Assembly (NCBI RefSeq): GCF_003918875.1
Contig: NW_025766974.1
Location: 496,001 to 560,000, forward strand
Length of the DNA: 64,000 nt
Direction of reading: 5' to 3'
Origin: Haliotis rubra
Taxonomy: Eukaryota
Shown: positions 1-64,000 of the stretch, piece by piece
Position numbering within the stretch: position 1 is the first letter of the stretch
Layout of the letters: each line of letters opens with the position of its first letter
Notes under the pieces: generated by a model
What the model saw: only the letters and a program-made list of their open reading frames with translations
Databases searched by the model: none
What the model was told of the DNA's origin: nothing
Made by a program: the position numbers and the translations under genes

Positions 1-1362
1 TCCTGTTTGTGGAGGTGAGTTAGTTATAGATTGCCTGACAGAGGTTCCTGTTTGTGGAGGTGAATTAGTTATAGATTGCCTGACAGAGGTTCCTGTTTGT
101 GGAGGTGAGTTAGTTATAGATTGCCTGACAGAGGTTCCTGTTTGTGGAGGTGAATTAGTTATAGATTGCCTGACAGAGGTTCCTGTTTGTGGAGGTGAAT
201 TAGTTATAGATTGCCTGACAGAGGTTCCTGTTTGTGGAGGTGAGTTAGTTATAGATTGCCTGACAGAGGTTCCTGTTGTGGAGGTGGAGATTGTGACAGA
301 GGTTAGTTATAGATTGCCCTGACAGAGGTTCCTGTTTGTGGAGGTGAGTTAGTTATAGATTGCCTGACAGAGGTTCCTGTTTGTGGAGGTGAATTAGTTA
401 TAGATTGCCTGACAGAGGTTCCTGTTTGTGGAGGTGAGTTAGTTATAGATTGCCTGACAGAGGTTCCTGTTTGTGGAGGTAGAATTAGTTATAGATTGCC
501 TGACAGAGGTTTTGTGGAGGTAGAATTAGTTATAGATTGCCTGTTTGTGGAGGTGAGTTAGTTATAGATTGCCTGACAGAGGTTCCTGTTTGTGGAGGTG
601 AGTTAGTTATAGATTGCCTGACAGAGGTTCCTGTTTGTGGAGGTGAGGTTATAGATTGCCTGACAGAGGTTCCTGTTTGTGGAGGTGAGTTAGTTATAGA
701 TTGCCTGACAGAGGTTCCTGTTTGTGGAGGTGAATTAGTTATAGATTGCCTGACAGAGGTTCCTGTTTGTGGAGGTGAGTTAGTTATAGATTGCCTGACA
801 GAGGTTCCTGTTTGTGGAGGTGAGTTAGTTATAGATTGCCTGACAGAGGTTCCTGTTTGTGGAGGTGAGTTAGTTATAGATTGCCTGACAGAGGTTCCTG
901 TTTGTGGAGGTTAGTTAGTTATAGATTGCCTGACAGAGGTTCCTGTTTGTGCCTGACAGAGGTGAGGTTAGTTAGTTATAGATTGCCTGACAGAGGTTCC
1001 TGTTTGTGGAGGTTAGTTAGTTATAGATTGCCTGACAGAGGTGGAGGTTCCTGACAGAGGTTCCTGTTTGTGGAGGTTAGTTAGTTATAGATTGCCTGAC
1101 AGAGGTTCCTGTTTGTGGAGGTGAGTTAGTTATAGATTGCCTGACAGAGGTTCCTGTTTGTGGAGGTTAGTTAGTTACAGATTGCCTGACAGAGGTTCCT
1201 GTTTGTGGAGGTGAGTTAGCTATAGATTGCCTGACAGAGGTTCCTGTTTGTGGAGGTTAGTTAGTTATAGATTGCCAGACAGAGGTTCCTGTTTGTGGAG
1301 GTGAGTTAGCTATAGATTGCCTGACAGAGGTTCCTGTTTGTGGAGGTGAGTTAGTTATAGAT
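1..1362 (+). repeat. 45-bp minisatellite carrying an exon end plus donor (CCTGTTTGTGGAG|GTGAGT), about 30 copies
   Basis: Unit gaggttcctgtttgtggaggtgagttagttatagattgcctgaca. PVCG + G|gtgagt mirrors the sushi exon end at 32754, and phase 1 matches the exon at 1597. Confidence 0.9.
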
Positions 1363-1596
1363 TGTTTGTTTTAGTTTGACCGGTCCAGGGAATTGACCAC
1401 TGACCTTCCAAATCTCCTACTTGATCTTTTACAAAATACAGGCAGTTAGTAGAATAGAGTAGGGGCATCTAATCAGTCCTATAAAACGTATCCATTCTGT
1501 GTACTAGGCACTGTGTGATTGCTATCTTCATCAAAAGTTGGGGTTTGTCTTATTAAATGATAGTTTTTGAAAGCAGTATTTTTACCTCTGTTTCAG

Positions 1597-1820
1597 CTCC
1601 GGGCCTAATAGACTGGGAGCTGAGACTGAAGATCGTGTTCCAGGAAAGTCCCCCGGCGCCCATGTCTCTAGATTGTCAGACAACTTATGTTAAAGATTCC
1701 ACCATTAAACTGCAGGAACTATTTCTTGTGTTATCAGATCTATGTAATAAATCTGGCTTGAGTCCTGACTATATCAATCATACATACACTGGACATAACT
1801 ATATGGCTGACACTCAACAG
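1597..1820 (+). CDS. Exon: post-sushi linker (APGLIDWEL...ADTQQ)
   Basis: tttcag| acceptor, |gtaagg donor, phase 1-0. Confidence 0.8.
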
Positions 1821-4800
1821 GTAAGGTTCAGTTTCCTAATTAAATACTGATAATCAGTGTCTCATACCTTTAACTTGTGATGATTCCAGTCTTATGTTAT
1901 ATCACCACAATGATAAACAAATGACTTCAATATATTTTGCATGCACAGAGGTAGACACATAATACCTGTTGTACATTCTGTGTAAATATGACTTATGTAA
2001 TTTTGTTTAACACCAAAATGCTTCATTTGGCATTCAAATGCAATGGTGTCCTAGCCTAGAATAGAATCAGTGCATATCTGTTGGTAAAGGTGAGAGTTAA
2101 CCTTGAAGCTGTTAACATCCTGGGTTGCTCTGCCACTGTAGCTAAATACATTTACTACACGTCTCGATAGTGTGTGTTGGATTTCATGACAGGTATTTCC
2201 TTGGTAGGAAGTGTATTCTTGCATCATATTCTTGCAGCTGACATATGATATTGCACTGGAACTTCTCCCAAATCGTCCCCTCAAGTCTGACTACAACACC
2301 TGTGTTGAAGTTATCATTGACCAGTTTCCTCTCCTGGCAGCAGAGTTGTTTAAAGCGCCAGCAAATACATCATCTCCTTGTCCTGTGATAAGACCAAGCG
2401 CAGAACCCAGCGTCAGCCTCGTAACTTGTGATGGGCGGGGTGAGCTGCGGGAGATCAGTGGGGAAACGATCTGCAGTAAGTATTAATCTATGTTGGTTAT
2501 GTAATGCCACACTCAGCAATATTGCAGTTATATAATTTAAATATACAAATTTATTACCTATGAGGGCGAAAATATTGGGGTTCATATTTTTCATATGATG
2601 CTCTAGGGCAAAATATCACTTTGTCATGGTGATTAGACGTCATGAACAATTCTATGACGTGACTTGCGTTCTACATACGGAGACAGCGGGTAGCTGAAAG
2701 TAGATTGGGATCTATTTTCCTCAATTTGACGACTTCGGTAATAAACAGAATATTATATAGTGCCCATATCATACTATGTTTACGACACTTGTGCCTAAAT
2801 ATCGGTATATCCCTCACTCTCGCTCGTGAAATACCAACATTTAGGCACTTGTGTTGTAAACATAGTATGACATGGGCAGTCATATAATATCCTCTATATA
2901 TTATAATGCCACGCCCAGCAATATTGCAGCTGTGTAAATAATCACTAAACAAGATAATCCAGTGATTGATATTGTGATCAACAATCCTTTGTGTATGATA
3001 GGGTCAGACAAATTTTGTATGTCCATGAAATTCAAGAAAGATTGCAGATCAAGGCTCCATTTGACAAAAGTTACTTAACAATGATATATTGTAGCTCTAA
3101 AATCAGTACCTGTAAAGATCTGGGTTAGAATTAGTTGTCAGCAGCCAATGCGTGTTGCTTGACGCAACCAACCAGATCGGGTGATAAGGCTCACTGACTT
3201 GGTTGATACATGTCATGGTATCCTTACTGCGTAGATCGATGCTCGCGATATCAATCACTGGATTGTCTGATCCAGACTCAATTATTTACATTTGGAAATA
3301 TTGCTGAGTATGACGTAAACAGAAAACAAACAAAGATCAATTTGTGGAAATGGGCCTGAGAGAATATATAATAACACATGGATCTGTAATGTTTGTATAC
3401 ATTGTCAAAATTGATCTTTTCAGGAATATTTGTTGTAGGTGAATGAAACAATATACTTTATGTGCTATTTTCATAGAGACCTTAGTTCAGTGACCAAAAC
3501 ACAGTCTATGTTAACCAGTAGCCGGTAACATTTCTGTCAGGATAGGAGAAATTACTCCTGCCTGCCCGAGAGTCTTGTATTAATTTAAGTTGCTGTGCCA
3601 AAATTTACAATTTTGAAACAGATGTTGATATCTGACTCACATACAGGAGAGCTAGAGGTACGTTTGTGATGACAATGATGAAACTTTTAAAGGCATTGAG
3701 TTAAAGTTATCTACTCTACATTAATATGTAGTTACAAATGTGGCCACTTGCAAGACTGGTTCCATATATGAAACACCAGCCAACCTTGAGTGGAGTTGAA
3801 CATATTTCAGGAAGTGCCTCAGAATTAGGTCAAGGTCACTGAATCCTTATTTGTAATTTTAGCTTTAACTGAAGAATGACTTCTGGTGACATGGGGTCAG
3901 CTTGACCTACTTTTAATGAATAACATATCATACTTTGATTGAGACTTTAAACACACCTGATGCATTTGAAGTTTGGTATGATCTCAGTCCAGGAGAAAGT
4001 TTGGACATAATGGTGTGTATCCATGAAACACTCTTATAAATGTGTTACTGATGCTGCAGACGTGTGTCCCCCCGGAACCTCCTACAACTCCACTGGTCAT
4101 TGCCAGCTGTGTCAACCTGGGTCCTATCAGAATGTGTCTGGACAAAGCATGTGTACACCTTGCCCACTAGAAACCTGGACTGATGGTACTGGCAAAACAT
4201 CAGAACTGGACTGTATCAGTAAGTTTGTACAACTTGTATGTTTTATTGGTGGTGACAATAAAATTTCCATTAAAGCACAGACCTTCTGGTATGAGATCAG
4301 ATGTTTTGTCAGTATGACCGAACAGGTGAATCCCGTCAGCAGACTCACAAGGCAAGGCTGCCATCTGTTGAATGGTTCCCTGCCCTGATACACTTACTGT
4401 AGATAGTACTCGACTTGCTTGCCATGTACCAATAAGATTATACTGGACATTCACAATTCCATGCTTCCTCCAAAACAGCTGAGTGAGTTACTTGAAAACT
4501 AACCCACTCGGACACCAATTACTTACACTGTGTGGTTAGGTTCAAGTTCCAAATGGGGCTCCTTCAAAAATGTACTAGAATTTGTGCTTTACTGAAGTGT
4601 GATCCCAAATATAACATATCTTACATACAGTCATTTTCTGAAGGGCATTTTGAGATAAACAACTAGCAGGATTTGTATCTATTATAAGCGTGTTAAGACA
4701 AATCACTTTCACATTTTGTAGATTACAGCTACACAATGTGAAGGTAATTTATCATTACAAGCTTATTACAGCTACAGAATGAGAAAGTAATTTATCTTAA

Positions 4801-7800
4801 CAAGTTTATTACAGCTACAAAATGTGAAAGTAATTATCTTAACAATTTTATTACAGCTACAAAATGTGAAACTAATTTATCTTAACAAGCTTATTACAGC
4901 TTCAAAATGTGAAACTAATTTATCTTAACAAGCTTATTACAGCAACACAGTGTGAAAGTAATTTATCTTAACAAGCTTATTACAGCTACAAAATGTGAAA
5001 GTAATTTATCTTAACAAGCTTATTACAGCTACAAAATGTGAAACTAATTTATCTTATCAAGCTTATTACAGCTACAAAATGTGAAAGTAATTTATCTTAA
5101 CAAGCTTATTACAGCTACAAAATGTGAAAGCAATTTATCTTAACAAGCTTATTACAGGTACGAAATGTGAAAGTAATTTATCTGAACAAGCTTATTACAG
5201 CTACAAAATGTGAAAGTAATTTATCTTAACAAGCTTATTACAGCTACAAAATGTGAAAGTAATTTATCTTAACAAGCTTATTACAGCTACAAAATGTGAA
5301 AGTAATTTATCTTAACAAGCTTATTACAGCTACAAAATGTGAAAGTAATTATCTTAACAAGCTTATTACAGCTTCAAAATGTGAAACTAATTTATCTTAA
5401 CAAGCTTATTACAGCAACACAGTGTGAAAGTAATTTATCTTAACAAGCTTATTACAGCTACAAAATGTGAAAGTAATTTATCTTAACAAGCTTATTACAG
5501 CTACAAAATGTGAAACTAATTTATCTTATCAAGCTTATTACAGCTACAAAATGTGAAAGTAATTTATCTTAACAAGCTTATTACAGCTACAAAATGTGAA
5601 AGCAATTTATCTTAACAAGCTTATTACAGGTACGAAATGTGAAAGTAATTTATCTGAACAAGCTTATTACAGCTACAAAATGTGAAAGTAATTTATCTTA
5701 AGCTTATTACAGCTACAAAATGTGAAAGTAATTTATCTTAACAAGCTTATTACAGCTACAAAATGTGAAAGTAATTTATCTTAACAAGCTTATTACAGCT
5801 ACAAAATGTGAAAGTAATTATCTTAACAAGCTTAAACCTGTTGATTTATTGTGCTACCAAATTTTGTAACAACAAGAATCGTTTTGATATAATCATAAAC
5901 ACTTATAATGTTATAGCATGCATTACAATTTAATTAGCATGAATTCTTCTTGTTTCTGATTTCAGGATAGATGTTTAACATACCATTGTTTCAACTGAAT
6001 CCTATACATTACAGGTGTATGTCCTGGGGAAATTGTATCGGACACTGGACTCCCCCCTGGCTGAGAGTGTCTACCCAACATATCCATTGTTTCAACTGAA
6101 TCCTATACATTACAGGTGTATGTCCTGGGGAAATTGTATCGGACACTGGACTCCCCCCTGGCTGAGAGTGTCCCCCCAACATATCCATTGTTTCAACTGA
6201 ATCCTATACATTACAGGTGTATGTCCTGGGGAACTTGCATCGGACACTGGACTCTCCCCTGGCTGAGAGTGTCTACCCAACATATCCATTGTTTCAACTG
6301 AATCCTATACATTACAGGTGTATGTCCTGGGGAACTTGTATCGGACACTGGACTTCCCCCTTGCTGAGAGTGTCCCCCCAACAGATCCATTGTTTCAACT
6401 GAATCCTATACATTACAGGTGTATGTCCTGGGGAACTTGTATCGGACACTGGACTTCCCCCTTGCTGAGAGTGTCCCCCCAACAGATCCATTGTTTCAAC
6501 TGAATCCTATACATTACAGGTGTATGTCCTGGGGAACTTGTATCGAACACTGGACTTCCTCCTTGCCGAGAGTGTCCCCCCAACACCTACAAGAACAGCA
6601 GCACCCACTGTACATCATGTGCTGAGGACACAATCTTTGTTGGGCTGGATAATCCATTGCTGGCTGACTGTAAAGGTGAGTCAGACACTATCTCACCGAA
6701 ATCAGATCTGTTACTCAATGCAATACAGCTTTCCAAGGAAATCTTACAAAACTTTGACAGGAAGTTGCATCAGGTGAAATTTCTAATGTGTAATTGGATG
6801 CTTCACTACATATAGTGTCGCCTTCACAGCAGTAGACTGGCTTCCTGTATCTTGGAAACTAATCATAATCAGGCAGTTCTGAATGGAACAAAGTAAAATC
6901 TGCTTCAGGGATAAAGAAGAAAGGTGAATTCTCACTTTGTGGCTGTGTTTGTGGCTGTGTTTATGACGGTGTTTGTGGCTGTGTTTATGACTGTTTAGCG
7001 GTCTGATGTAGACATTTGCACCATCAGCAACATAATGAATAATTGTATCAAACGAAATTTGAAATAATATGTCTAACAGCAAACATCTACATTCTTATGA
7101 CAAATCTATGCCCGACATTATTTCTTTTACCAATACAGCAAGCATTTATGCATGTGATACTGTTGAAATCAGATGATCATTTTTTTGTGTTCAGTTGAGT
7201 CATTTCTACATGTTTTACTGTCACAAATGTCTGTCCTTTTTGTGCATTATTCTTATGCTCATGGTGTTTAATGTTAGTGTTAGTGAATGTTTGTAACTTG
7301 AGTTTGAGTTTGTCATTTACAATGTATCATTTGGTTGTTGTTATGTGTTATTTAACTTATGTCATGTAAAATCAGGTCATTTGTGCTTGTGAGTTGTGTC
7401 TGTCCATCAGACTCTATGTGGTCATTCCTTCACCTTGACCTAAAGCAGTTCAGTGCCAGGTGCTTGTGTGTCATAATGTTATCTTATTCCTCAGTGTTGG
7501 ATCTGTTTCTCTGTCTGCATGACAATCTAGCTTCAGGATTTGTACACGTCCTTGTGTATGCCTTTGGGCTCTCTCCCACTCCCTTGAGATGTTAGAATAC
7601 TGTGGTGTTGGGTCTGGTTGTCTGTCTGCTTCTCTATGTGATGGTGTACTGGTAGATGTACTCTCCCGCTACCATGGGACCAGGCAGTGTGTGATGTTAT
7701 AATACTGTGGTGTTGGGTCTGGTTGTCTGTCTGCTTCTCTATGTGATGGTGTACTGGTAGATGTACTCTCCCGCTACCATGGGACCAGGCAGTGTGTGAT

Positions 7801-55800: not shown

Positions 55801-58800
55801 ACAACCCCTACAGCAACGCTACCTGTGTCACACAGTAACAGTGTCTCAGGGGCCATGTGAAGGTCTTCAGAAACCATGTTTGTTGTAAAAAACCCACTTT
55901 TCATTGTGTACACAAAAATCAATTTTAATTTATAAACCTGATTCTTGAATATTAAAGCAACTCATGCTCTTCTGTGTGTTTCAATGTTGCCAGTGGACTG
56001 TGTGTCGGGGAAGGCGTATGATGCAGTCTCCACCCAGTGTGAGGACTGTCCCCGGGGGTACTACCGCAACCAGACCGAGAGGAAGCCCCAGTGCCAGCTG
56101 TGTCCCCCAGACTACATCACAGAGAGGATAGGGTCGATCTCAGCTGACAACTGTTCTATGGGTAGGCTGATGATATGTGATCATAACAGAAAATGGGGAT
56201 CGAACACTAGAATACATTGCTCATTACTTTAGTCACTGGTGTCGTAAATGTTCAGGATGAAGCCATCCAATCATTACATCATACTTATTGTCTCTGTTAC
56301 AACTATCTGCACCATCCAGCCATTACATCAAACCCCCTGACAGATTGTCTTTGTTACAACTATCTGCACCATCCAGCCGTTACATTAAACCCCCTGACAT
56401 ACTATCTCTGTGACAGCCAACTACACCACCAAGCCATTACATTATACTCCCCTGACATACTATCTCTGTGACAGCCAACAATACCACCAAGCCATTACAT
56501 TATACTATACCAGCCCATGACATACTATCTCTGTGACAGCCAACTTTACATTATACCCCTGACATATTATCTCTGTGACAGCCAACTACACCACCAAGCA
56601 ATTACATTAAACCCCCTGACATACTATCTCTGTGACAGCCAACTACACCACCAAGCCATTACATAATACTCCCCTGACATACTATCTCTGTGACAGCCAA
56701 CTACACCACCATGCCATTACATCATACTCCCCTGACATACTATCTCTGTGACAGCCAACTATACCACACAAGCCATTACATTATACCCCCTGACATATTA
56801 TCTCTGTGACAGCTAACTGCACCACCCCTGGTCAGTATGTGGACACCTCCAGGAATACCTGTGCTGACTGCCCGGCAGGGACATACCAGGACCAAAAGTG
56901 GCAGGTCGCATGTAAGACCTGCGCCCCAGGATTCACAACCAGAACAACGGGGACAGGCTCTGTCCTCCAGTGCTATCGTACGTACAAGCCATTATCTTAT
57001 GACAAAGAACGGCCTTGTGTTATATGTCAGATGTATTAGTGGAAATATGCACATGCTACCCTGATTTGGAAATCCTAAATGTATTGTTGGATTTGTCAGA
57101 GACCATATACCGATATATGGTCTCTGGATTTGTATATGCAAGGGTTTCTATGGGCAAAAACAGATATAAAAACAGCCAGTACTTTCTTGGCTGTCCAGTA
57201 CAGTGACTATGGAGATGATGTCAGTGCTTTGACAACCATATTACCAACCTAGTTGTAGAAGTTGTGGAATGTAGAAGAAAACCAACTGAAGTCAAGTAAA
57301 CTGAGTTTGTATTAAGGATATATATGCAATGACATTTTCCCATTTCTCATGGAGAAGCAAATATTTAAGAGCATTTCGTGCCCCTGCATCACCTCAGAAC
57401 ATTTAAAAGTTTCAAATCAAGAGGCTAAAGGAACAATAGTACAGTTCCTCCTTGAAAGGTCTGACATAATCTGAGTGACATACTGTTGAGACATGATGAC
57501 TGACTGTTGTCAGGTGACTGCCCCTCAGGATGGCAGGTCGATGAGTCAACCAATGCCTGTCAGGTGTGTGCCAAGGGTCAGTACCGAGCCAAAGGACAGA
57601 GCTGGACTTGTCAGTTCTGTGACATCAGCTTCACCACTGCAAGCAGTGGGTCCATGTCCATCGTTGACTGCAATATCCGTGAGTACGAGGCAATCATCCC
57701 CTTGCAAGATTTGAGAGAGTGCCCAATTATTAGTAATCAAAATAACCACTTTCAAGTATAAATCTAAACCATTATTATGACAGAACACTCGTGTTCTTGC
57801 AGTTGATTAATAGCAGGAATTAACTGACATTTCTAAACATGTAAATCTGACTGAACCATAGTCATTCTGAAAAGTGTTAAAGATATTCTTTATTGACAAT
57901 GACACAATTTAAATCAAAGAAATCACTCAAATCTGTTGGTTCTGGAATATATTGTATAACGGGCGGATACAGCTTTTGGGGAAGGGGGGGAGGCGCACAC
58001 TCTTGCGAAAGGGAGGGTGTAATAAACATTTAGGACAAAAGGGCGGGTGCGCACCCCTGCAACCCCCAACCCCCTCTGAATCCGCCTATGTATTACTTGT
58101 GTGTAATGTCATGTTGTCGGATGCGCAGCTCTGTGCAGTGCGGGCACCTCCCACAATGCAGACCTGAAGACGTGTGTGCCATGTGCCAAGGGAAGCTACC
58201 AGTCTATGATAAACCAGCAGAGTTGTGTCCCTTGTCCCAACCAACAAACCACTCGAAACACTGGCTCTCTTACGAGCACTGACTGTTTATGTGAGTATAT
58301 CTTGTTTCTATTTGTTGTGTAACACCACATTCAGCATATTTCAGCTGTATAAACCTGGTCAGAAGATAGTCATCATGACAACAGATCCCCACAATCTGTG
58401 TATGATGACATGCAATCAACCAAGTTACTGAGCTTGACAACCAATCCACTTTACCACCTCTAATGACAAGCAGACATTGCTGGCTACCTGTTCTTACTGA
58501 AATCCCCATGGAATTATTTGTTCAGAATGAATAAGTGCAATATAACCTCTGCATGTGTGACATGCTTGCATGCACTGTGCCCAAAAAGCAAATGTCTGGT
58601 CAACGTCAGTGAGATTTTGTAGTCTTAACAAACTGGTAAACATGGCCTCACACATTGATGTGCTGTTATATTAATAAATACTGCCCAATTTGATGGTTAA
58701 TGAAAATAACTAAACTGGTGGTCAAAGCGTTTACTCGTCACACCTATGAGCTGGGTTTGATTCCCCCTCTGGGTACAGTGTCTGCAGCCCCATTCTGTTG

Positions 58801-61800
58801 TCATCCACTGTGATGTTGAACACTTATTGTGGCATAACATCATTCTTCAACACTCACTCATTATTCATATGTCCTGTATATGATGACATTTTCCTGGTCT
58901 GTTATGGGAATTACAAAGCAGCAAAGTTCCAATATTTTTCAGAAGAAGGGGCTAGCATGAATATTTGTTGGCCAAATACGCTTACAGCAGATAATCTGTA
59001 AAGATCAACTGTACACAAATGCTCTCAATACTCCATTGGCAACCTATGGACCATCGCTGGACAGATGGTACGCTGAAGGTAGCAGCTACAACTGTGATGT
59101 GTAACTATATCCAGGGCAGGAGTCATCCTACAGATAACATCCTTACCTTGTCATCTTTGGTCATGTGGACAAGGCACCCGACTTCGGATCAGAAGGTCCT
59201 TGGTTTGAATCCCAGCACGAGACTCAGATCCTTTATGGCCGCTACACATGCAGTCCACTTCAGCGCACATGCTGAGACTCCAGAACATGATGAACTAGGC
59301 TGACTGACTTTGTACCATGTTTCAGCACTGTGTATCCTGAACGAACACAACTGTACAGCCCCAACTGAGTGCCACGACGTCCCGGAAGGTTTCACCTGTA
59401 GATGTTCTCGAGGCTACAGTGGTGTACCCGGCAACTGTACACGTATGTGCACATATTGTATACTTTACTGTAATACACATATACTCAGACATATATACAA
59501 GACTACAATATTGAACAAACTATTTGGATAACAACTTCTTTTATTTTGTCATATCAATACAGTTTATTGTAGTGTTATCAAGCAGGAAGGAACCATGAAG
59601 AGAAGGGGAATCTAACAAAGAAAACAACATAATTAACATCATTGGCTAGGCAGTAATCTGATAAAGCCAGCCCTGTAGAGTTGACAAGGGAAAGTGCGTT
59701 GATGTGTGTATCCCCTGTAGATGTGTGTGTAGACAGTTATCCTTGATGTGTGTATCCCTGTAGATGTGTGTAGACAGACAGTTATCCTTGATGTGTGTAT
59801 CCCCCTGATATCAGTTATCCTTGATGTGTGTATCCCCCTTTATCCTTGATGTGTGTATCCCCTGTAGATGTGTGTAGACAGTTATCCTTGATGTGTGTAT
59901 TCCCTGTAGATGTGTGTAGACAGTTATCCTTGATGTGTGTATCCCCTGTAGATGTGTGTAGACAGTTATCCTTGATGTGTGTATCCCCTGTAGATGTGTG
60001 TAGACAGTTATCCTTGATGTGTGTATCCCCTGTAGATGGCAGGCATGTAATCAACCAGATGAGATTCCAGAGATAAGTGAAATCAGAATAGGTGAAGTCT
60101 ACAGAGATGAGTGAAATCAGTCTAGGTGAGTCTATAGGGATGGTGAAATCAGACTAGGTGAGTCTTGGCAGGCATGTAATCAACCAGATGAGATTCCAGA
60201 GATAAGTGAAATCAGAATAGGTGAAGTCTACAGAGATGAGTGAAATCAGTCTAGGTGAGTCTATAGGGATGGTGAAATCAGACTAGGTGAGTCTTTGCAG
60301 GCATGTAATCAACCAGATGAGATTCCAGAGATAAGTGAAATCAGAATAGGTGAAGTCTACAGAGATGAGTGAAATCAGTCTAGGTGAGTCTATAGGGATG
60401 GTGAAATCAGACTAGGTGAGTCTTGGCAGGCATGTAATCAACCAGATGAGATTCCAGAGATAAGTGAAATCAGAATAGGTGAAGTCTACAGAGATGAGTG
60501 AAATCTGTCTAGGTGAGTCTATAGGGATGGTGAAATCAGACTTGGTGTGTCTACAGAATCTCATCTTTATTCAGCAACATATCTCAGTTTCCACTTTCCT
60601 TGTTTATCATCCAAGATGGTTTCATCAGCTCTGTTCCGTATAAATCATTATTAAGTTATACTGTGAATAATTCAATTTTACTGGAGAATGTCTAGCTTGC
60701 ACAATTTTGGAACATTTTGATAGTCTATATACACTTCAGTGGAGTTCTTCAGTTACAATCCTATGGCCTGCAGGAGGCAAATGTGTCTCTAATAGGGTCC
60801 TTTAAGCATGCCAGATGATATTATTATTGGTTCATTTGCCAGATTCACTTTGCAACACTTTCCTCCTACATCAGTCTGTGATATTACTTAAATCCAGTTC
60901 CAAATTGTGTTAAACCAAACTCACTCAGTCACTAAGTATTTATTTGTTTCAACGCCTACATCTGACAACAAAGATGTAATCATCGGTGCAGTCATTGGTG
61001 CTTGCATGCTTCTACTGTGTGCTGGGCTGGTTCTTGTGGGTGTTTATGCCTGTCGTAGGTAAGTATGACTTACATAGTGTTGCTGGGGCTGGTTCTTGTG
61101 GGTGTTTATGCCTGACTTAGGTAAGTATGACTTACATAGTGTTGCTGGGCTGGTTCTTGTGGGTGTTTATGCCTGTCGTAGGTAAGTATGACTTACATAG
61201 TGTTGGCTTGGCTGGTTCTTGTGGGTGTTTATGCCTGTCGTAGGTAAGTATGACTTACATAGTGTTGGCTGGGCTGGTTCTTGTGGGTGTGTTAAGTATG
61301 ACTGCTGGGCTGGTTCTTGTGGGCGTTTATGGTTCTTACATAGTGTTTGCTTGGCTGGTTCTTGTTTATGCCTGTAGAGGTAAGTATGACTTACATAGTG
61401 TTGCTGGGCTGGTTCTTGTGGGCGTTTATGCCTGTGCCTGGGGCTGTCGCCTGTAAGTATGACCTGTCGAGGTACATAGTGTTGCTGGGCTGGTTCTTCA
61501 GTAAGTGGACTTACATAGTGTTGGCTTGTGGTTATGCCTGTCGTAGGTAAGTATGACTTACATAGTGTTGCTGGGCTGGTTCTGTGGGCGTTCTTGTGGG
61601 TAAGTATGACCTACATAGTGTTGGCTTGGCTGGTTCTTGTGGGCTGCCTGTCGTTAAGTATGACTGAGTGTTGCTGGGCTGGTTCTTGTGGGCGTGCCTG
61701 TAAGTAGTATGTATGACTTACATAGTGTTGCTGGGCTGGTTCTTGTGGGCGTTTATGCCTGTCTTGGCTGGTTCTTGTGGGCGTTTATGCCTGTTGTAGG

Positions 61801-62755
61801 TAAGTATGACTTACATAGTGTTGCTGGGCTGGTTCTTGTGGGCGTTTATGCCTGTCGTAGGTAAGTATGACTTACATAGTGTTGGCTTGGCTGGTTCTTG
61901 TGGGCGTTTATGCCTGTCGTAGGTAAGTATGACTTAGATAGTGTTGCTGGGCTGGTTTGTAAAATTCATCAATAAATGTAACAGGTCCTGGCTGGTAGAC
62001 CTGTGAAACTCACTCACTCACCTGACTGGTAATATGACGGTCCTGTAAAGTATTAAAATGGTGTAGTGTACTGTACGTTCAGATAATTACTTCAGAGTCT
62101 GGAATGAATGAGTGACAGACACAGATAACTACTCTGATTCGCTGTAGGCATGCTTTCAGTGTTTTTGTGCATCTCTCCGGATGTTTCCATGTCCATTCTC
62201 TACATTTGTGCATACTGGACACACATTTGTGTGTGGCGGAAAGCCCATTTTAATTGTTTTTAATCTTGTGAGAGCAGTGTTAAAACACAAAAACAATTAT
62301 TTTAGTGACTTGGAATTTTGCATTAAGTGTTTGCTTAACACTAGGACATCAATGAAATGAGTAATCAATTTTTCATTAGCATGCACTGAGAGACAAAGGA
62401 AAGTTTACCCTCCCTTTAAGTATTGGGTACTGATGAAATGCTTTACAGAGACAAACATGTCACTATAAGGTCTCTGCCCTTTGGTTACAATGTTCAGTGT
62501 GTGACACAGATCAATTTCTGTTACAGAAGACCCCTAGCATCGGAGTCTAATGAACGACTGGATGAAGATAATGCGAGTATGACCCCGTCTACCTTTGTCG
62601 CCACCCGTGCTCACACTGCCAGCTATGGCCCCTACATGGTAGCATTCGCTCCCCCAGATCAGGGTGGGGCATATGACCCCTCCTTCTACCGCAAGCAGAG
62701 TGATGTGGACAGGGGCTATATTCATTACGAGAATGCCAGTATTAAACTTGCATAG
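1597..62755 (+). CDS. Multi-exon gene (5' end outside window) for a giant type-I membrane protein, Uninflatable/SVEP1-like (sushi, Ephrin_rec_like, PAN, EGF, LamG/pentraxin, HYR, TM)
   Basis: About 45 exons chained by eye with GT-AG sites and matching phases. Cys patterns of EGF and GCC2/GCC3 repeats; LamG start DYDMCF...YSITMWVKY...GTFFSLY resembles the Uninflatable LamG start; HYR, sushi and TM segments; stop TAG at 62753-62755. Confidence 0.9.
2238..2475 (+). CDS. Exon: linker (LTYDIALE...SGETIC)
   Basis: ttgcag|, |gtaagt, phase 0-1. Confidence 0.8.
2750..2890. mobile_element. Foldback element, about 60-bp imperfect inverted arms
   Basis: atattatatagtgcccatatcatactatgtttacgacac... versus ...gtgttgtaaacatagtatgacatgggcagtcatataatat. 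Confidence 0.65.
3108..3335 (+). mobile_element. SINE-like interspersed repeat family B (other copies about 10097-10225, 12415-12660; reverse about 10915-11115, 38455-39120, 58300-58505)
   Basis: Shared gatctgggttagaatt...gtagatcgatgctc...atcactggattgtctggtccagactc...ggaatattgctgag core with (AAAC)n-type tail. Confidence 0.7.
4060..4218 (+). CDS. Exon: Ephrin_rec_like (GCC2/GCC3) repeat
   Basis: VCPPGTSYNSTGHCQLCQPGSYQ...DCI; ctgcag|, |gtaagt; 159 nt, phase 1-1. Confidence 0.9.
4720..5835. repeat. 43-bp AT-rich minisatellite, about 26 copies
   Basis: Unit aagcttattacagctacaaaatgtgaaagtaatttatcttaac. Confidence 0.95.
5978..6590 (+). repeat. 101-bp repeat of acceptor plus exon 5' half (6 copies; the last is the real exon)
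   Basis: Unit ...aatcctatacattacag|gtgtatgtcctgggg...; copies start at 6015, 6116, 6217, 6318, 6419, 6520. Confidence 0.95.
6520..6675 (+). CDS. Exon: Ephrin_rec_like repeat
   Basis: VCPGELVSNTGLPPCRECPPNTYKNSSTHCTSCAED...DCK; 156 nt, phase 1-1, |gtgagt. Confidence 0.85.
7572..8433. repeat. 105-bp minisatellite, about 8 copies, with degenerate flanking copies
   Basis: Unit gtgtgtgatgttataatactgtggtgttgggtctggttgtc...gggaccaggca. Confidence 0.95.
8554..8811 (+). CDS. Exon: PAN/apple domain
   Basis: SACTF...TECENSC...CVGFNF...MCFLY...YDFYERVC; ctacag|, |gtaggt; 258 nt, phase 1-1. Confidence 0.8.
9070..10090. repeat. 59-bp pyrimidine-rich minisatellite, about 17 copies
   Basis: Unit ttccctccatccctccttcaatcacccacaaacccactcacttgatgactcttgcctag. 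Confidence 0.95.
10493..10666 (+). CDS. Exon: Ephrin_rec_like repeat (alternative in-frame start at 10508 possible)
   Basis: KCDQGTFSYSGHKPNCRPCPVGYF...CQECP...SCVP; |gtgagt. Confidence 0.85.
10818..10907 (+). CDS. Exon: EGF
   Basis: ADVLCNPGPCTNSGSC...CNCSA; tttcag|, |gtagga; acceptor duplicated 48 bp upstream. Confidence 0.85.
11329..11442 (+). CDS. Exon: EGF
   Basis: FTGRYCE..DTCASGPCYNGGSC...FNCSCAV; 114 nt, phase 1-1. Confidence 0.9.
11755..12140 (+). repeat. 46-bp repeat of acceptor plus exon start (about 8 copies)
   Basis: Unit gagacttgtataacttatgtttgcag|gttttgaaggatcccagtgt. Confidence 0.95.
12115..12244 (+). CDS. Exon: calcium-binding EGF
   Basis: GFEGSQCETNVDDCLPQTCGEAGVCIDGVNSTMCQCLEGYSGT; |gtcagt, phase 2 end. 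Confidence 0.85.
13032..13168 (+). CDS. Exon: EGF
   Basis: CLTVDVKACERNPCQNGGTC...CMCLPTFTGDSC; phase 2-1. Confidence 0.9.
13585..13756. mobile_element. Long hairpin (about 80-bp arms, 10-nt loop); MITE or Penelope-like terminal remnant
   Basis: tacaatattgaac...cttgtaccatt / aatggtacaag...gttcaatattgta; partial second copy near 59504-59590. Confidence 0.65.
13939..14163 (+). CDS. Exon: two EGF modules
   Basis: FCDSSPCLNGGTC...FTCDCRSGFTGDMCE...CLCGTGY; 225 nt, phase 1-1. Confidence 0.9.
14461..14784. repeat. 36-bp minisatellite, about 9 copies
   Basis: Unit atcaatctgatactgcagaatacagtgactttcttt. Confidence 0.9.
14787..15113. mobile_element. Tc1/mariner-pogo-type MITE
   Basis: Termini TACCGTATTTCCT...AGGAAATACGGTA with internal GCGCTTATTAGAGG subrepeats. 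Confidence 0.75.
15176..15274 (+). CDS. Exon: EGF (3' donor unclear)
   Basis: GCTAIDYCQNGLCMNGGTCVNTEGGYTCNCPH; atacag| acceptor; expected phase-1 donor not found. Confidence 0.75.
15658..15824 (+). mobile_element. tRNA-derived SINE family A with target-site duplication
   Basis: A box TAGCCTAGTGG, B box GGTTCGATTCC, (AGTC)n tail, TSD TGGTTTCTTAT on both sides. Confidence 0.9.
16433..16587 (+). CDS. Exon: calcium-binding EGF (5' boundary uncertain, 16433 or about 16471)
   Basis: NINECVLCDPTGVNSCIDEINSYTCLCKPGYTDANCS; |gtaaga, phase 0. Confidence 0.7.
16950..17146 (+). CDS. Exon: calcium-binding EGF plus EGF
   Basis: TNIDECISAPCQQAGMCVDGIDDYSCICPNGWTGKDC...IYC; phase 0-2. Confidence 0.9.
18633..18760 (+). 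CDS. Exon: EGF
   Basis: CSDFTHGDRCENVLDLCEDANPCLDRALC...CQCPP; phase 2-1. Confidence 0.9.
19343..19463 (+). CDS. Exon: EGF (apparent +1 G in homopolymer at about 19408-19413)
   Basis: TSGTSCNE...CDASLCQNGG then, one base shifted, TCSRTDAGAISCSCVQ; 121 nt instead of 120. Confidence 0.8.
19817..19957 (+). CDS. Exon: calcium-binding EGF
   Basis: GYTGSLCETNEDDCATSPCVSPATCLDGVNKYFCRCPVGKQPPTCNT; |gtaaga. Confidence 0.9.
19867..22052 (+). repeat. 110-bp repeat of EGF exon 3' half plus donor (19 full donors and a partial copy)
   Basis: ACAG|GTAAGA every 110 bp from 19957 to 21937. Confidence 0.95.
22413..22587 (+). CDS. Exon: LamG/pentraxin part 1
   Basis: DADVDYDMCF...GYSITMWVKYSNVDGLGTFFSLYED; ctccag|, |gtaagt. 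Confidence 0.85.
22907..24131. mobile_element. Non-autonomous DNA element with 26-bp perfect TIRs and TA flanks (Tc1/mariner type) containing a LINE 3' fragment
   Basis: TACTCATGCCAATAATGGTTGTCACC at 22907 and its reverse complement ending at 24131, TA on both sides. Confidence 0.75.
23230..23765 (+). pseudogene. Degenerate 3' end of a CR1-like LINE ORF2
   Basis: Broken frames read RLRYMTSALNYDLFR, CQCGHGCENVFHYVLE.PLY..QR, LHGN, NVFKYVHIYI..TKRF. Confidence 0.6.
24188..27965 (+). mobile_element. 5'-truncated, frameshifted non-LTR retrotransposon (RT plus C-terminal CCHC; RTE-X/CR1-group-like)
   Basis: QAGF, AFIDFSK, GVHQGENLSPLMFCLFINDL, LLYADD, YLG, NHNLPVEVGRW...NLC..DEFHYLFKC; ends aataagagagtttgagttttga. 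Confidence 0.9.
25547..27598 (+). repeat. 63-bp minisatellite inside the LINE ORF2 (NHNLPVEVGRWHGIDRENRTC), about 32 copies
   Basis: Unit acagaacctgtaaccacaacctacctgttgaagttggccgttggcatggcattgatcgtgaaa. Confidence 0.95.
28149..28391 (+). CDS. Exon: LamG/pentraxin part 2
   Basis: SVNDGIWHMVIVTWDNTRGELSLIMD; phase 2-2. Confidence 0.9.
28969..29255 (+). CDS. Exon: LamG/pentraxin part 3
   Basis: LWISMGA...PFHGCVSQVSLYSRHLD...VMRW; phase 2-1. Confidence 0.85.
29545..29676 (+). CDS. Exon: HYR part 1
   Basis: DSSPVKVVFCPENQFV...VYWEDPRFS...SNYRP; ctatag|, |gtagtt. Confidence 0.85.
29737..30440. repeat. 25-bp minisatellite with mostly alternating A/B variants (50-bp higher-order unit)
   Basis: atgcatcacctcaatacaattatta / atgcatcacctctatacaagtactg. 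Confidence 0.9.
30600..30695 (+). CDS. Exon: HYR part 2
   Basis: GVALSTGSHMVVCEARDAAGNVALCSFMVYVN; |gtgagt. Confidence 0.85.
30689..31683 (+). repeat. 92-bp repeat carrying the HYR donor (GTCAACA|GTGAGT), about 11 copies
   Basis: Unit gtcaacagtgagtataagctagagtatgttacatc...gtaaaggactt. Confidence 0.9.
32155..32320 (+). mobile_element. tRNA-derived SINE family A
   Basis: Homologous to the 15658 copy; (ACTC)n tail. Confidence 0.85.
32542..32754 (+). CDS. Exon: sushi/CCP-like domain
   Basis: ESCPVQAIP...ACTPSCP...PNYYTCGPGGSW...YPPCG; 213 nt, phase 1-1. Confidence 0.85.
32769..33250. repeat. 70-bp minisatellite, about 7 copies, starting about 15 bp after a donor
   Basis: Unit tggatctaaccacagacaggtgtatgtagcctttaatagtgaatctaacccctactgggggtgttcttcc. 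Confidence 0.9.
33933..34164 (+). CDS. Exon: post-sushi linker
   Basis: ELTGPAQQVLTMNLQY...WNAFCEDSGC...VTFPNV; phase 1-2. Confidence 0.85.
34816..34903 (+). CDS. Exon: linker
   Basis: AVLNTSAESRTPTEILTRAVLDKHMFNYN; cttcag|, |gtaagt; phase 2-0. Confidence 0.8.
34980..35740. repeat. 69-bp minisatellite containing GTAAGTGTTG like the upstream donor, about 11 copies
   Basis: Unit acagagtgcttccatctaaacttgtctgtaagtgttgacccaacagaagacaacacttgttccctaaca. Confidence 0.9.
36630..37491 (+). repeat. 70-bp repeat of acceptor plus diverged exon start, about 12 copies
   Basis: gatgttgtttctctctgcttgtag|atctccctgcca...ccagtgccttcagtgttg versus real gtttatag|gtcttactacca...ccagtacctttagtgttg. Confidence 0.85.
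37492..37588 (+). CDS. Exon: linker end
   Basis: VLLPGAMPEASTFSVDVALLCALGEVEVEGDC; phase 0-1, |gtgagt. Confidence 0.8.
38138..38299 (+). CDS. Exon: Ephrin_rec_like 1 of 16
   Basis: TCGPGTY...CLNCPMGQYQPQFGQVTCESC...DCI; 162 nt. Confidence 0.9.
38501..38927. mobile_element. Mutator-like MITE with about 75-bp TIRs and 9-bp TSD
   Basis: GCTGAAGGGGTCGTTGTC... / ...GACAACGACCCCTTCAGC; TSD CTCAGTAAC at 38492-38500 and 38928-38936. Confidence 0.85.
40781..40942 (+). CDS. Exon: Ephrin_rec_like 2 of 16
   Basis: NCTIGQYYN...CEPCPIGTYQ...ECV; 162 nt. Confidence 0.9.
41133..42582 (+). repeat. 70-bp minisatellite ending at an acceptor; units contain CTCTCCTATGGCAG|GTGA, about 20 copies
   Basis: Unit gaggactgttggtggctgtcaaggtctgtgtattgtggtgactgttcagctctcctatggcaggtgattg. 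Confidence 0.9.
42583..42750 (+). CDS. Exon: Ephrin_rec_like 3 of 16
   Basis: GCESGEQ...CVECPVGTYRE...CLNCDPGFIT...CTI; 168 nt. Confidence 0.9.
   Translation, partial: TDVSRGSSCRWQLVGYVLSALWEPTGRTQSTRCVSTVTQGSLHPPQHPTHLPSVL
43260..43421 (+). CDS. Exon: Ephrin_rec_like 4 of 16
   Basis: ACPVGEFRN...CQPCPQNTYQDQKWQDNC...DCK; 162 nt. Confidence 0.9.
43690..45145 (+). repeat. 46-bp minisatellite running from a SINE tail to the next acceptor, about 30 copies
   Basis: Unit attaaacaatacaccaaccaaccaacatggtgtgatgagtgttggt. Confidence 0.9.
45151..45318 (+). CDS. Exon: Ephrin_rec_like 5 of 16
   Basis: FCESGFE...CRECPIGTYKD...CLPCSGNFIT...CSV; 168 nt. Confidence 0.9.
46181..48088. repeat. 78-bp minisatellite interrupted by a 0.9-kb insertion (47062-47973)
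   Basis: Unit agtgcataccacagtttaacacggatacacaactcagacactgtgtgttgactcccagccatgggatgcaggttatat; resumes at about 47976. Confidence 0.9.
47062..47973. mobile_element. Unclassified insertion: 13-bp-IR-bounded segment plus abutting 176-bp hairpin
   Basis: TTTCTAAGATGCC (47062) / GGCATCTTAGAAA (to 47797); hairpin 47798-47973. Confidence 0.7.
48280..48443 (+). CDS. Exon: Ephrin_rec_like 6 of 16 (apparent -1 base at G run 48343-48346)
   Basis: NCPPGLFQ...CDLCPRG then, shifted, SYQPQAAQQDCLPC...DCT; 164 nt instead of 165. Confidence 0.8.
49003..49165 (+). mobile_element. tRNA-derived SINE family A with TSD
   Basis: A/B boxes; TSD TCAAAACTTAAA on both sides. Confidence 0.9.
49256..49420 (+). CDS. 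Exon: Ephrin_rec_like 7 of 16
   Basis: FCPSGQE...CRPCDQGFYKN...CVQCPEGYIT...CTV; 165 nt. Confidence 0.9.
   Translation, partial: CSAHLARRLWVASVGPVTKASTRTTPRACCPCVCSVQKDTSLLVLEQSLLGNAL
49612..49776 (+). CDS. Exon: Ephrin_rec_like 8 of 16
   Basis: NCSAGTRF...CEMCPEGEYQPQPYQNSC...QCL; |gtacgt; 165 nt. Confidence 0.9.
49749..51810 (+). repeat. 66/56-bp repeat of exon end plus donor (GTGTCTCA|GTATGT), about 30 copies degrading at the ends
   Basis: Unit ggatctacatcagacacacagtgtctcagtatgtagtactactctgtctcctgaactattaacact. Confidence 0.9.
51819..51944. mobile_element. Tc1/mariner-type MITE
   Basis: TA-TACTCAACA...AAGTTAAGGACC / GGTCCTTAACTT...TGTTGAGTA-TA. Confidence 0.75.
52073..52240 (+). CDS. 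Exon: Ephrin_rec_like 9 of 16
   Basis: FCPSGQE...CSLCSLGTYKD...CQTCPAEFTT...CSL; 168 nt. Confidence 0.9.
52437..52598 (+). CDS. Exon: Ephrin_rec_like 10 of 16
   Basis: NCSAGFY...CMECRVGEYQPLPAQVECLQC...ECR; 162 nt. Confidence 0.9.
52901..53494. mobile_element. Tc1-like MITE shell containing a foldback element (hairpin 52970-53133, short IRs at 53136 and 53434)
   Basis: TA-TACTGAACAAA..AGGGATAT / ATATCCCT..TTTGTCCAGTA-TA; inner gataaacatcat..gttggccaattt / aaattggccaac..atgatgtttatc. Confidence 0.6.
53619..53777 (+). CDS. Exon: Ephrin_rec_like 11 of 16
   Basis: SCSEGLE...CVPCLIGFYKN...CEACPPGFRT...CNV; 159 nt. Confidence 0.9.
55023..55184 (+). CDS. Exon: Ephrin_rec_like 12 of 16
   Basis: GCEPGSY...CTLCVEGSYQPQKWQDSCLPC...QCV; 162 nt. 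Confidence 0.9.
55440..55641. mobile_element. hAT-like MITE
   Basis: CAGGGGTGGAAGTAAC / GTTATTTCCACCCCTG termini; no clear TSD. Confidence 0.5.
55994..56161 (+). CDS. Exon: Ephrin_rec_like 13 of 16
   Basis: DCVSGKAY...CEDCPRGYYRN...CQLCPPDYIT...CSM; 168 nt. Confidence 0.9.
56268..56828 (+). repeat. 58-bp repeat of acceptor plus exon start, about 10 copies
   Basis: ctctgtgacag|ccaactacaccacc versus real ctctgtgacag|ctaactgcaccacc. Confidence 0.9.
56813..56977 (+). CDS. Exon: Ephrin_rec_like 14 of 16
   Basis: NCTTPGQY...CADCPAGTYQDQKWQVACKTC...QCY; 165 nt. Confidence 0.9.
57514..57678 (+). CDS. Exon: Ephrin_rec_like 15 of 16
   Basis: DCPSGWQ...CQVCAKGQYR...CQFCDISFTT...CNI; 165 nt. Confidence 0.9.
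57961..58087. mobile_element. Short Harbinger-like MITE
   Basis: GGCGGATACAG / CTGAATCCGCC termini, GC-rich body. Confidence 0.55.
58129..58290 (+). CDS. Exon: Ephrin_rec_like 16 of 16
   Basis: LCSAGTSHNADLKTCVPCAKGSYQSMINQQSCVPCPNQQTT...DCL; 162 nt. Confidence 0.9.
59150..59224 (+). pseudogene. Degenerate tRNA-Arg(TCG)-like sequence (pseudogene or SINE head)
   Basis: TGGACAAGGCACCCGACTTCGGATCAGAAGG...GGTTTGAATCCC resembles tRNA-Arg TCG D, anticodon and T arms; stems mispaired. Confidence 0.5.
59326..59442 (+). CDS. Exon: membrane-proximal EGF
   Basis: LCILNEHNCTAPTECHDVPEGFTCRCSRGYSGVPGNCT; 117 nt, phase 1-1. Confidence 0.9.
59699..60037 (+). repeat. 42-bp minisatellite with acceptor-like CCCCTGTAG|ATGTGTGT
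   Basis: Unit tccttgatgtgtgtatcccctgtagatgtgtgtagacagtta. Confidence 0.9.
60038..60557 (+). repeat. 129-bp higher-order repeat (4 copies) of about 32-bp subunits with donor-like GAAATCAGACTAG|GTGAGT
   Basis: Copies start at about 60038, 60167, 60296, 60425. Confidence 0.9.
60953..61058 (+). CDS. Exon: transmembrane helix (acceptor atypical; alternative start 60929)
   Basis: PTSDNKDVIIGAVIGACMLLLCAGLVLVGVYACRR; |gtaagt, phase 2. Confidence 0.8.
61021..61957 (+). repeat. 61-bp repeat of TM exon 3' end plus donor, about 15 copies, partly garbled
   Basis: Unit gctgggctggttcttgtgggtgtttatgcctgtcgtag|gtaagtatgacttacatagtgtt. Confidence 0.9.
62527..62755 (+). CDS. Terminal coding exon: cytoplasmic tail
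   Basis: ttacag|A AGA CCC... phase 2 matches TM exon; RPLASESNERLDED...YDPSFY...YIHYENASIKLA then TAG. Confidence 0.8.
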
Positions 62756-63140: not shown

Positions 63141-64000
63141 ATAGTGGGATATGATATTGATGGGTCAAATAGTGGGATATGATATTGATGGGTCAAATAG
63201 TGGGATATGATATTGATGGGTCAAATAGTGGGATATGATATTGATGGGTCAAATAGTGGGATATGATATTGATGGGTCAAATAGTGGGATATGATATTGA
63301 TGGGTCAAATAGTGGGATATGATATTGATGGGTCAAATAGTGGGATATGATATTGATGGGTCAAATAGTGGGATATGATATTGATGGGTCAAATAGTGGG
63401 ATATGATATTGATGGGTCAAATAGTGGGATATGATATTGATGGGTCAAATAGTGGGATATGATATTGATGGGTCAAATAGTGGGATATGATATTGATGGG
63501 TCAAATAGTGGGATATGATATTGATGGGTCAAATAGTGGGATATGATATTGATGGGTCAAATAGTGGGATATGATATTGATGGGTCAAATAGTGGGATAT
63601 GATATTGATGGGTCAAATAGTGGGATATGGATGGGTCAAATATGGGATATGATATTGATGGGTCAAATAGTGGGATATGATATTGATGGGTCAAATAGTG
63701 GGATATGATATTGATGGGTCAAATAGTGGGATATGATATTGATGGGTCAAATAGTGGGATATGATATTGATGGGTCAAATAGTGGGATATGATATTGATG
63801 GGTCAAATAGTGGGATATGGGATATGATATTGATAGGTCAAATAGTGGGATATGATATTGATGGGTCAAATAGTGGGATATGATATTGATGGGTCAAATA
63901 GTGGGATATGATATTGATGGGTCAAATAGTGGGATATGATATTGATGGGTCAAATAGTGGGATATGATATTGATGGGTCAAATAGTGGGATATGATATTG
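63141..64000. repeat. 28-bp minisatellite downstream of the stop, about 30 copies, runs off the window
   Basis: Unit atagtgggatatgatattgatgggtcaa. Confidence 0.95.

Follow-up and report, generated by a model that had tools for sequence, protein, structure and literature searches.

The 64,000-nucleotide window analysed here (Haliotis rubra, contig NW_025766974.1, positions 496,001 to 560,000; no N, ~40% GC) carries on its + strand a single long gene made of one-domain exons, and many of the minisatellite arrays that punctuate this gene contain, or derive from, one of its own exon-intron junctions. In a Pfam scan the exons matched EGF (PF00008) and ephrin-receptor-like (PF07699) domains, most exons corresponding to one such domain each, in phase 1. 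With its sushi and Laminin-G/HYR parts and its transmembrane exon, the gene is of the EGF/ephrin-receptor-like/sushi transmembrane type and encodes a cell-surface protein. A HMMER search of the full protein library, with one RNA-confirmed exon as query, led to the orthologues LOC124137287 of H. rufescens (XP_048248840.1, 3946 aa) and XP_071105159.1 of Haliotis cracherodii. The window is 65-97% identical to these Haliotis proteins per exon (tblastn).

The exon model was built by tblastn with both orthologues, choosing for each pair of neighbouring exons the GT/AG combination that best rebuilt the orthologous peptide. In the resulting model of 45 exons every intron is GT-AG and the phases are mostly 1-1. 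Four introns are backed by the joints of RNA contigs assembled from a related abalone that is ~96% identical to the window, namely 56977>57514, 57678>58129 and 58290>59326, plus the exon end at 61058. For comparison, the exons of the orthologous H. cracherodii locus (L001) were rebuilt as well; nearly all of its junction peptides match the annotated protein exactly, and Tandem Repeats Finder (TRF) reports 22 in-gene arrays there.

In the window, TRF reports ~30 distinct minisatellite arrays, including every array cited by an earlier note that had been made from the DNA letters alone. The 24 sizeable ones amount to 22.2 kb, or 35% of the window. Ten of the 23 sizeable in-gene arrays physically contain a mapped splice junction, an acceptor in six cases and a donor in four (Table 1). 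Four further arrays were traced to a junction (34980-35771, 59699-60038, 60037-60557 and 1-1364, the last one weakly). The junction arrays run head to tail, with units of 42-129 bp, 1.9-30 copies and 80-98% matches (TRF), and in the ten that contain a junction each unit joins 4-91 nt of exon to 19-82 nt of intron, the proportions varying by array. The units of different arrays are mutually unrelated, as the earlier note had also stated, and share no common motif; hence they represent independent events and not one satellite family. That note had described about 15 arrays as built from junctions. This holds for 13-14 of the 15, ten of which span a mapped junction while four more are derived from one (1-1364 being the weak case), but not for the array that it placed at 41133, for which a homology test found no similarity to either flanking junction.

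Table 1. Host gene and principal minisatellite arrays of the window; real junctions are given as the two positions flanking the splice site
Feature	Positions	Strand	Unit and copies	Description
Host gene	1597..62752	+		45 mapped exons; stop at 62752; transmembrane exon 60929-61058
Array	1..1364	+	45 bp, ~30 copies	Probably donor-type, from a sushi exon upstream of the window; weak, real exon not visible
Array	5977..6585	+	101 bp x 6	Acceptor; unit 35 nt intron + 66 nt exon; real acceptor 6519/6520
Array	10742..10834	+	48 bp x 1.9	Acceptor duplication; real acceptor 10817/10818; decoy 10770
Array	11755..12140	+	46 bp x 8.3	Acceptor; real acceptor 12114/12115; six intact decoys
Array	19867..22008	+	110 bp x 19.5	Donor; unit 91 nt exon + 19 nt intron; real donor 19957/19958; 18 intact decoys
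Array	30686..31683	+	92 bp, ~10 copies	Donor; real donor 30695/30696; nine intact decoys
Array	34980..35771	+	69 bp x 11.6	Derived from donor 34903, 77 bp away
Array	36631..37495	+	70 bp x 12.4	Acceptor; real acceptor 37491/37492; AG kept in 7/8 decoys
Array	41421..42555 (41133 in the earlier note)	+	70 bp x 16	Intronic; ends 27 bp before acceptor 42583; not demonstrably junction-derived
Array	43695..45159	+	46/60 bp, ~30 copies	Runs into acceptor 45150/45151; acceptor motif in last copies only
Array	49745..51482	+	66 bp x 27.7	Donor; real donor 49776/49777; GT kept in 21/26 decoys
Array	56291..56826	+	57 bp, ~9 copies	Acceptor; real acceptor 56812/56813; AG kept in 7/9 decoys
Array	59699..60038	+	42-45 bp, ~8 copies	Acceptor of small EGF exon; unit 28 nt intron + ~12-14 nt exon; aligned to H. 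cracherodii exon 59126-59239
Array	60037..60557	+	34/129 bp	Donor-type, same small EGF exon; homologous to 33-bp x 27.8 array across donor 59239 in L001
Array	61020..61957	+	61 bp, ~15 copies	Donor of transmembrane exon; real donor 61058/61059; GT kept in 11/11 decoys

The resemblance of the repeat units to the junctions differs between arrays. In 5977-6585, five decoys are identical to the real acceptor both in a 24-nt probe and in position weight matrix (PWM) score, and the decoy copies match the orthologous protein at 86-95% identity. The exon-derived part of the unit in 36631-37495 has diverged from the present exon, and in 43695-45159 the junction probe found no decoy with an identity of 70% or more. 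Of all 89 junctions, the one most similar to 34980-35771 is its flanking donor at 34903 (z = 3.7). The unit of 1-1364 reads ..TEVPVCGG/GTGAGT, and the orthologue has ..TYVPACG directly before the exon starting at 1597, which is a weak match. The array at 32769-33250 was tried as junction-derived and not counted, as its match to donor 32754 consists of just a 16-nt physical overlap of the test window. Each 110-bp unit of 19867-22008 also contains an open, AG-bounded segment of 75 nt.

Searching with a probe around each real junction yielded ~93 decoy sites, of which ~85 keep the AG or GT and most share the PWM score of the real site. Use of any decoy leads to a stop within 1-42 codons or to a frameshift; the decoys listed in the earlier note (6015-6419, 10770, 11839-12069, 37427 and 56755) were recovered and behave in this way. 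That note is also right that the intact copy lies next to the exon, yet this is uninformative, because it follows from the geometry of any tandem duplication that spans a junction. The RNA contigs of the related abalone, whose coverage is limited to two arrays, contain authentic joints only, and they end the transmembrane exon at 61058, which is the first donor copy of the 61-bp array. At the other covered position (window 56711-56813) the contigs show no joint from the exon end 56161 to 56813, and instead continue into ~100 nt of array and then >300-500 nt unlike the window; this may reflect intron retention, unspliced precursor or the path chosen in assembly. Within the 42-bp array there is a further RNA contig of 72 nt (59945-60016), ~2.4 times as deep as the mRNA contig.

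The number of junction arrays was compared with a null in which a seed of unit length may fall anywhere in the gene with equal probability, seeds that lie entirely within an exon being dropped, which corresponds to the idea that junction duplications are merely the survivors among duplications that touch exons. Random placement of whole arrays was rejected as a null, since arrays that swallow exons would be lethal. With uniform seeds, 2.19 of the 23 arrays are expected to span a junction, against 10 observed (P = 1.9e-5) or 13 if derived arrays are included (P = 1.8e-8). When the arrays are collapsed to one unit, the expectation rises to 3.3 (P = 6.5e-4 for 10 and 2.5e-6 for 13), and adding five small arrays as non-junction cases, 28 arrays in total, gives 3.5 expected against 10 observed (P = 1.2e-3). 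The junction enrichment suspected in the earlier note is thereby borne out within the gene, with 10-13 spanning or derived arrays against 2.2-3.3 expected, a ~3- to 5-fold excess over a uniform origin. At the H. cracherodii locus, 5-6 of the 22 in-gene arrays span a junction or end exactly at one, against 1.7 expected (P = 0.023 and 0.005, respectively), and the non-spanning arrays at most 40 bp from a junction number seven, compared with 1.66 expected (P = 4e-4). The non-spanning arrays of the window are not significantly near junctions (2 against 1.14 expected).

The two loci are separated by a deep split, the alignable unique intron sequence being ~70% identical. Among the 576 pairings of window arrays with L001 arrays, the six that match best are without exception positional orthologues, four of them being junction arrays: the 70-bp array at acceptor 37492 (L001 31565-32311, the top pair), the 66/63-bp array at donor 49776 (26.7 copies of 63 bp, L001 43880-45559), the 57/58-bp array at acceptor 56813 and the 34/33-bp array at the donor of the small EGF exon. 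Their near-equal unit lengths in both species indicate that these four arrays predate the split. Units are 0.85-0.96 identical within a species and 0.77-0.80 between species, and this greater likeness within species points to concerted evolution. Copy number may differ strongly, as at acceptor 56813, where H. cracherodii has only 2.3 copies (L001 50522-50657) compared with ~9 in the window. The acceptor at 12115 is also crossed by an array in H. cracherodii (48 bp, L001 7707-7943), but with weak unit similarity. Two intronic arrays, 14460-14783 and 29749-30441, are positional orthologues of L001 10478-10829 and 26597-26731 as well; hence long persistence with concerted evolution is general to abalone minisatellites and not confined to junction arrays.

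Other arrays are specific to one lineage. By TRF, L001 lacks the 110-bp donor array (19.5 copies), the 101-bp acceptor array and the 61-bp donor array; in turn it has a 48-bp acceptor array of its own, whose end coincides with the AG of the exon corresponding to the one that begins at 4060 in the window. Of the window arrays missing from L001, about half are of junction type, an argument that birth or expansion is biased and not retention alone. Unlike these, the arrays specific to the H. cracherodii lineage mostly do not span junctions. In the third species, the H. rufescens protein contains an exact tandem duplication of 28 aa (residues 2309-2364, VSPATCLDGVNQYFCRCPVGKLPPTCNT twice) that ends at the exon end bearing the 110-bp array (window 19817-22008), while H. 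cracherodii has a single copy of this segment. This could mean that a separate duplication, with another unit, took place at this exon end, or that a copy of the repeat was annotated or exonised as coding sequence.

The 66-bp donor array stands out by the distribution of its conservation. In the decoy consensus of 49745-51482 the 30 exon-derived nucleotides are more conserved between the window and L001 43880-45559 (29/30) than are the real exon ends (26/30). This could reflect constraint, selection for amplifiability or chance. The conserved part of the unit holds a hairpin with a 6-bp stem, AGACAC ACA GTGTCT.

Several features of the gene model deserve mention beside the arrays. Two exons, 19343-19463 and 48280-48443, show 1-nt frameshifts relative to the orthologue, each at a homopolymer run (GGGGGG compared with GGGGG, and CCC-AGGGG compared with CCTGAGGGG); these probably stem from the assembly and do not point to a pseudogene. 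The exon 15176-15281 comprises 106 nt, compared with 222 nt and two EGF halves in its H. cracherodii counterpart (L001 10867-11088), and tblastn found no counterpart of the second half in the window up to 16443. The small EGF exon is whole in H. cracherodii (L001 59126-59239, 114 nt), whereas the window keeps a degenerate 56-nt remnant, with its cysteines lost and a frame problem, between the acceptor and donor arrays of that same exon. In the RNA of the related abalone this exon appears as 109 unaligned letters between 59449 and 60955. At ~60955, where that RNA begins the transmembrane exon, the window has CG and not AG; an AG that keeps the frame lies upstream at 60927-60928. The degenerate exon is due either to exon decay through array recombination or to mis-assembly. 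A reading of the whole gene as a pseudogene could draw on the two frameshifted exons, the truncated exon and the degenerate one; the frameshifts, as 1-nt homopolymer indels, probably lend it no support, and the other two exons may bear on it.

In the related abalone, short-read DNA contigs leave out the greater part of the 129-bp and 61-bp arrays (60001-60401 and 61081-61947) at single-copy depth, and a contig of a 92-nt unit is ~8-fold deeper there; the pattern suggests that copy number differs or that some haplotypes do not carry the array, or else that the graph was collapsed. In the DNA runs of the window species and of the related abalone alike, the bins 59055-59251 and 59449-59645 have k-mer depths from thousands up to tens of thousands, and they are most likely high-copy dispersed repeats (transposable elements) within the intron. 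Past the gene, ~390 bp after the stop codon, a 28-bp x 30.7 minisatellite with 96% matches occupies 63141-64000 and runs off the window end.

Taken together, we consider it likely that the arrays are splice-junction minisatellites of the "mirage" type known from amphioxus. They would be tolerated side products that arise as exon edges are duplicated in tandem and undergo unequal exchange, hidden by strict exon-proximal site choice and nonsense-mediated decay (NMD), with a bias towards junctions in addition. A short tandem duplication (42-129 bp) that takes in an exon edge with its splice signal would be harmless, the copy adjoining the rest of the exon keeping the full exon context and the remaining copies becoming intron. 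Unequal exchange or slippage would then enlarge and homogenise the array, which could persist across deep species splits. The spliceosome would pick the exon-proximal site; judged by precedent, the donor arrays would fit the 5'-to-3' scanning rule of the human F7 gene and the acceptor arrays would fit exon definition. Any use of a decoy would produce a premature stop and be removed by NMD. We infer the neutrality of the arrays and, from precedent, the mechanism of site choice; a function is not required. Survivorship, which the earlier note had offered as one explanation, enters this account as the null and covers 2.2-3.3 spanning arrays. The remainder is left unaccounted for by it, so survivorship cannot be the whole story, and the ~3-5-fold excess points to a bias of birth, expansion or retention at exon edges.

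Some observations weigh against this account or narrow it. The RNA consists of contigs of a related abalone that bear on two arrays, and it is blind to decoy products cleared by NMD. One of these contigs spans the exon at 56813 and continues ~100 nt back into the array plus >500 nt of sequence unlike the window, which would mean that the array-bearing intron is partly retained or unspliced there. The null presumes a uniform propensity to duplicate and present-day (collapsed) intron lengths, and much shorter ancestral introns would give a smaller excess. Between the species, the decoys of the 66-bp donor array have a consensus that is 29/30 identical in its exon-derived part and 21/37 in its intron-derived part, which pure neutrality does not predict. 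Finally, the copy numbers come from a single assembly with homopolymer indels in two exons.

A further-reaching version holds that exon edges in abalone, as in amphioxus, are true hot spots at which minisatellites arise or expand, through a mutational process linked to splice junctions or to exon nucleosomes and common to distant, highly polymorphic marine invertebrates, with some decoy arrays perhaps under constraint, as the 29/30 compared with 21/37 identity in the 66-bp donor array hints. We regard this as a tentative possibility. The mutational bias at exon edges that the earlier note had proposed is compatible with the data, given that about half of the arrays absent from L001 are of junction type and that the same exon end has been duplicated differently in H. 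rufescens. If exon edges are such hot spots and some arrays are constrained, the arrays would be more than mere junk, feeding the gain of exons and introns or affecting splicing.

The opposite position, that duplications arise uniformly and the excess stems from the null model (shorter ancestral introns, a duplication rate that depends on composition, or a gene with very many junctions), appears unlikely. It would account for the drop in enrichment from 4.6x to 3x on collapsing the arrays, for the non-spanning arrays of the window, which do not cluster near junctions, and for the lineage-specific arrays of H. cracherodii, most of which do not span one. However, P stays at or below 1.2e-3 even in the most conservative version, with collapsed introns and the five small non-junction arrays added, the locus of the second species is enriched too, and erasing the excess would need introns of ~200-250 bp on average at the time the arrays were born. 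An assembly artefact, in which arrays or copy numbers result from mis-assembled repetitive long reads, is very improbable. The 1-nt homopolymer indels, the degenerate exon squeezed between two arrays and the related-abalone short-read contigs that skip 60001>60401 and 61081>61947 are what such an artefact might leave behind. Yet homologous arrays occur at the same junctions in another species that was assembled independently, k-mer depth over array bins is raised 10-20-fold (107.7 and 57.1 compared with ~4.5) in independently sampled DNA of the same organism, and the same repeat class has been confirmed in amphioxus by polymerase chain reaction (PCR) and resequencing (PMC3902484).

The decoys might, alternatively, be regulatory, the copy number of intact donors or acceptors tuning splicing, intron retention or NMD and hence dosage, or arrays of U1/U2AF sites aiding exon definition or protecting the long pre-mRNA. 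We judge this to be quite improbable. The mostly intact decoys of a strength equal to the real sites would suit such a role, but intactness is also expected from recent homogenisation. Four arrays have been kept at the same junctions despite ~70% identity of alignable unique intron sequence, the exon-derived half of the 66-bp decoys is conserved (29/30, compared with 21/37 in the intron half), and an RNA contig keeps the intron upstream of the acceptor array at 56813. On the other hand, copy number and presence vary freely between species, as with the 2.3 compared with ~9 copies at acceptor 56813 and the 110-bp array that H. cracherodii lacks, the contigs contain authentic joints only, the decoys of the amphioxus and F7 precedents are silent, and the arrays occupy unrelated junctions with no shared motif. 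The proposal of the earlier note that decoys tune dosage through NMD thus found no positive support in authentic-only RNA joints and freely varying copy numbers, steady-state contigs being blind to NMD-cleared products.

In kind the arrays are not new, but the phylum is, and what is added here is the quantified enrichment and the orthology across species. Earlier reports of junction minisatellites, in amphioxus and human F7, each dealt with individual genes. The presence of 10-13 of them in one abalone gene, 3-5-fold enriched and four of them orthologous, suggests a systematic phenomenon that extends beyond one phylum. With hundreds of identical decoy splice sites, such arrays provide a natural test set for how the spliceosome chooses among equal sites and for the seeding of exons and introns. 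If the bias is mutational, gene structure would be tied to the origin of tandem repeats. The arrays can also mislead gene prediction, and the H. rufescens model may count a repeat copy as coding sequence.

No report of junction minisatellites in molluscs was found in the literature, the sole abalone match being an ordinary intronic 27-bp minisatellite; the class itself, which the earlier note had overlooked, has already been described in amphioxus (PMC3087553, PMC3902484) and in human F7 intron 7 (IVS7; PMC1557585). A related idea is the Rogers model, as discussed in PMC3087553, in which introns are gained or exons created by tandem duplication across AG/GT proto-splice sites. The duplicated junction units of the abalone gene are likewise ready-made splice sites, and the 28-aa duplication of H. 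rufescens fits a repeat copy turned coding; unlike in that model, the window offers no demonstrated case of a new intron or exon. In F7 IVS7, the first element of a 37-bp variable number tandem repeat spans the exon boundary, and identical, functional pseudo-donors remain silent because 5'-to-3' scanning selects the donor that lies furthest upstream (PMC1557585). The abalone donor arrays at 19957, 30695, 49776 and 61058 have the same layout, with the authentic donor in the first element and the pseudo-donors downstream, of which 18 match the authentic donor at 19957 (with the same score), 11 at 61058 and 9 at 30695. In contrast to the abalone gene, F7 is one mammalian locus with 5-8 copies and without an acceptor-type counterpart.

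The closest parallel is found in the "mirage" minisatellites of amphioxus, which are described for Adh3, troponin C, the globins BflGb6/9 and PGBD5 in passages of PMC3087553 and PMC3902484 that discuss Canestro et al. 2002. There, AG/GT are kept, copy number varies, the repeats evolve in concert and splicing is undisturbed (PMC3087553, PMC3902484), and the arrays were checked by PCR and resequencing (PMC3902484). The abalone arrays share with them tandem units of tens to ~160 bp across an exon-intron boundary, on the 5' or 3' side, with many copies that retain AG/GT. Also common to both are concerted evolution and a varying copy number, between haplotypes or species in amphioxus and between species in abalone. 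Splicing at the authentic site would be a further shared trait, to judge by the RNA contigs of the related abalone at two arrays. They differ in belonging to Mollusca and not Cephalochordata, in the accumulation of 10-13 arrays in a single gene, in an excess over chance that has been quantified, and in four arrays that are orthologous across deeply diverged species.

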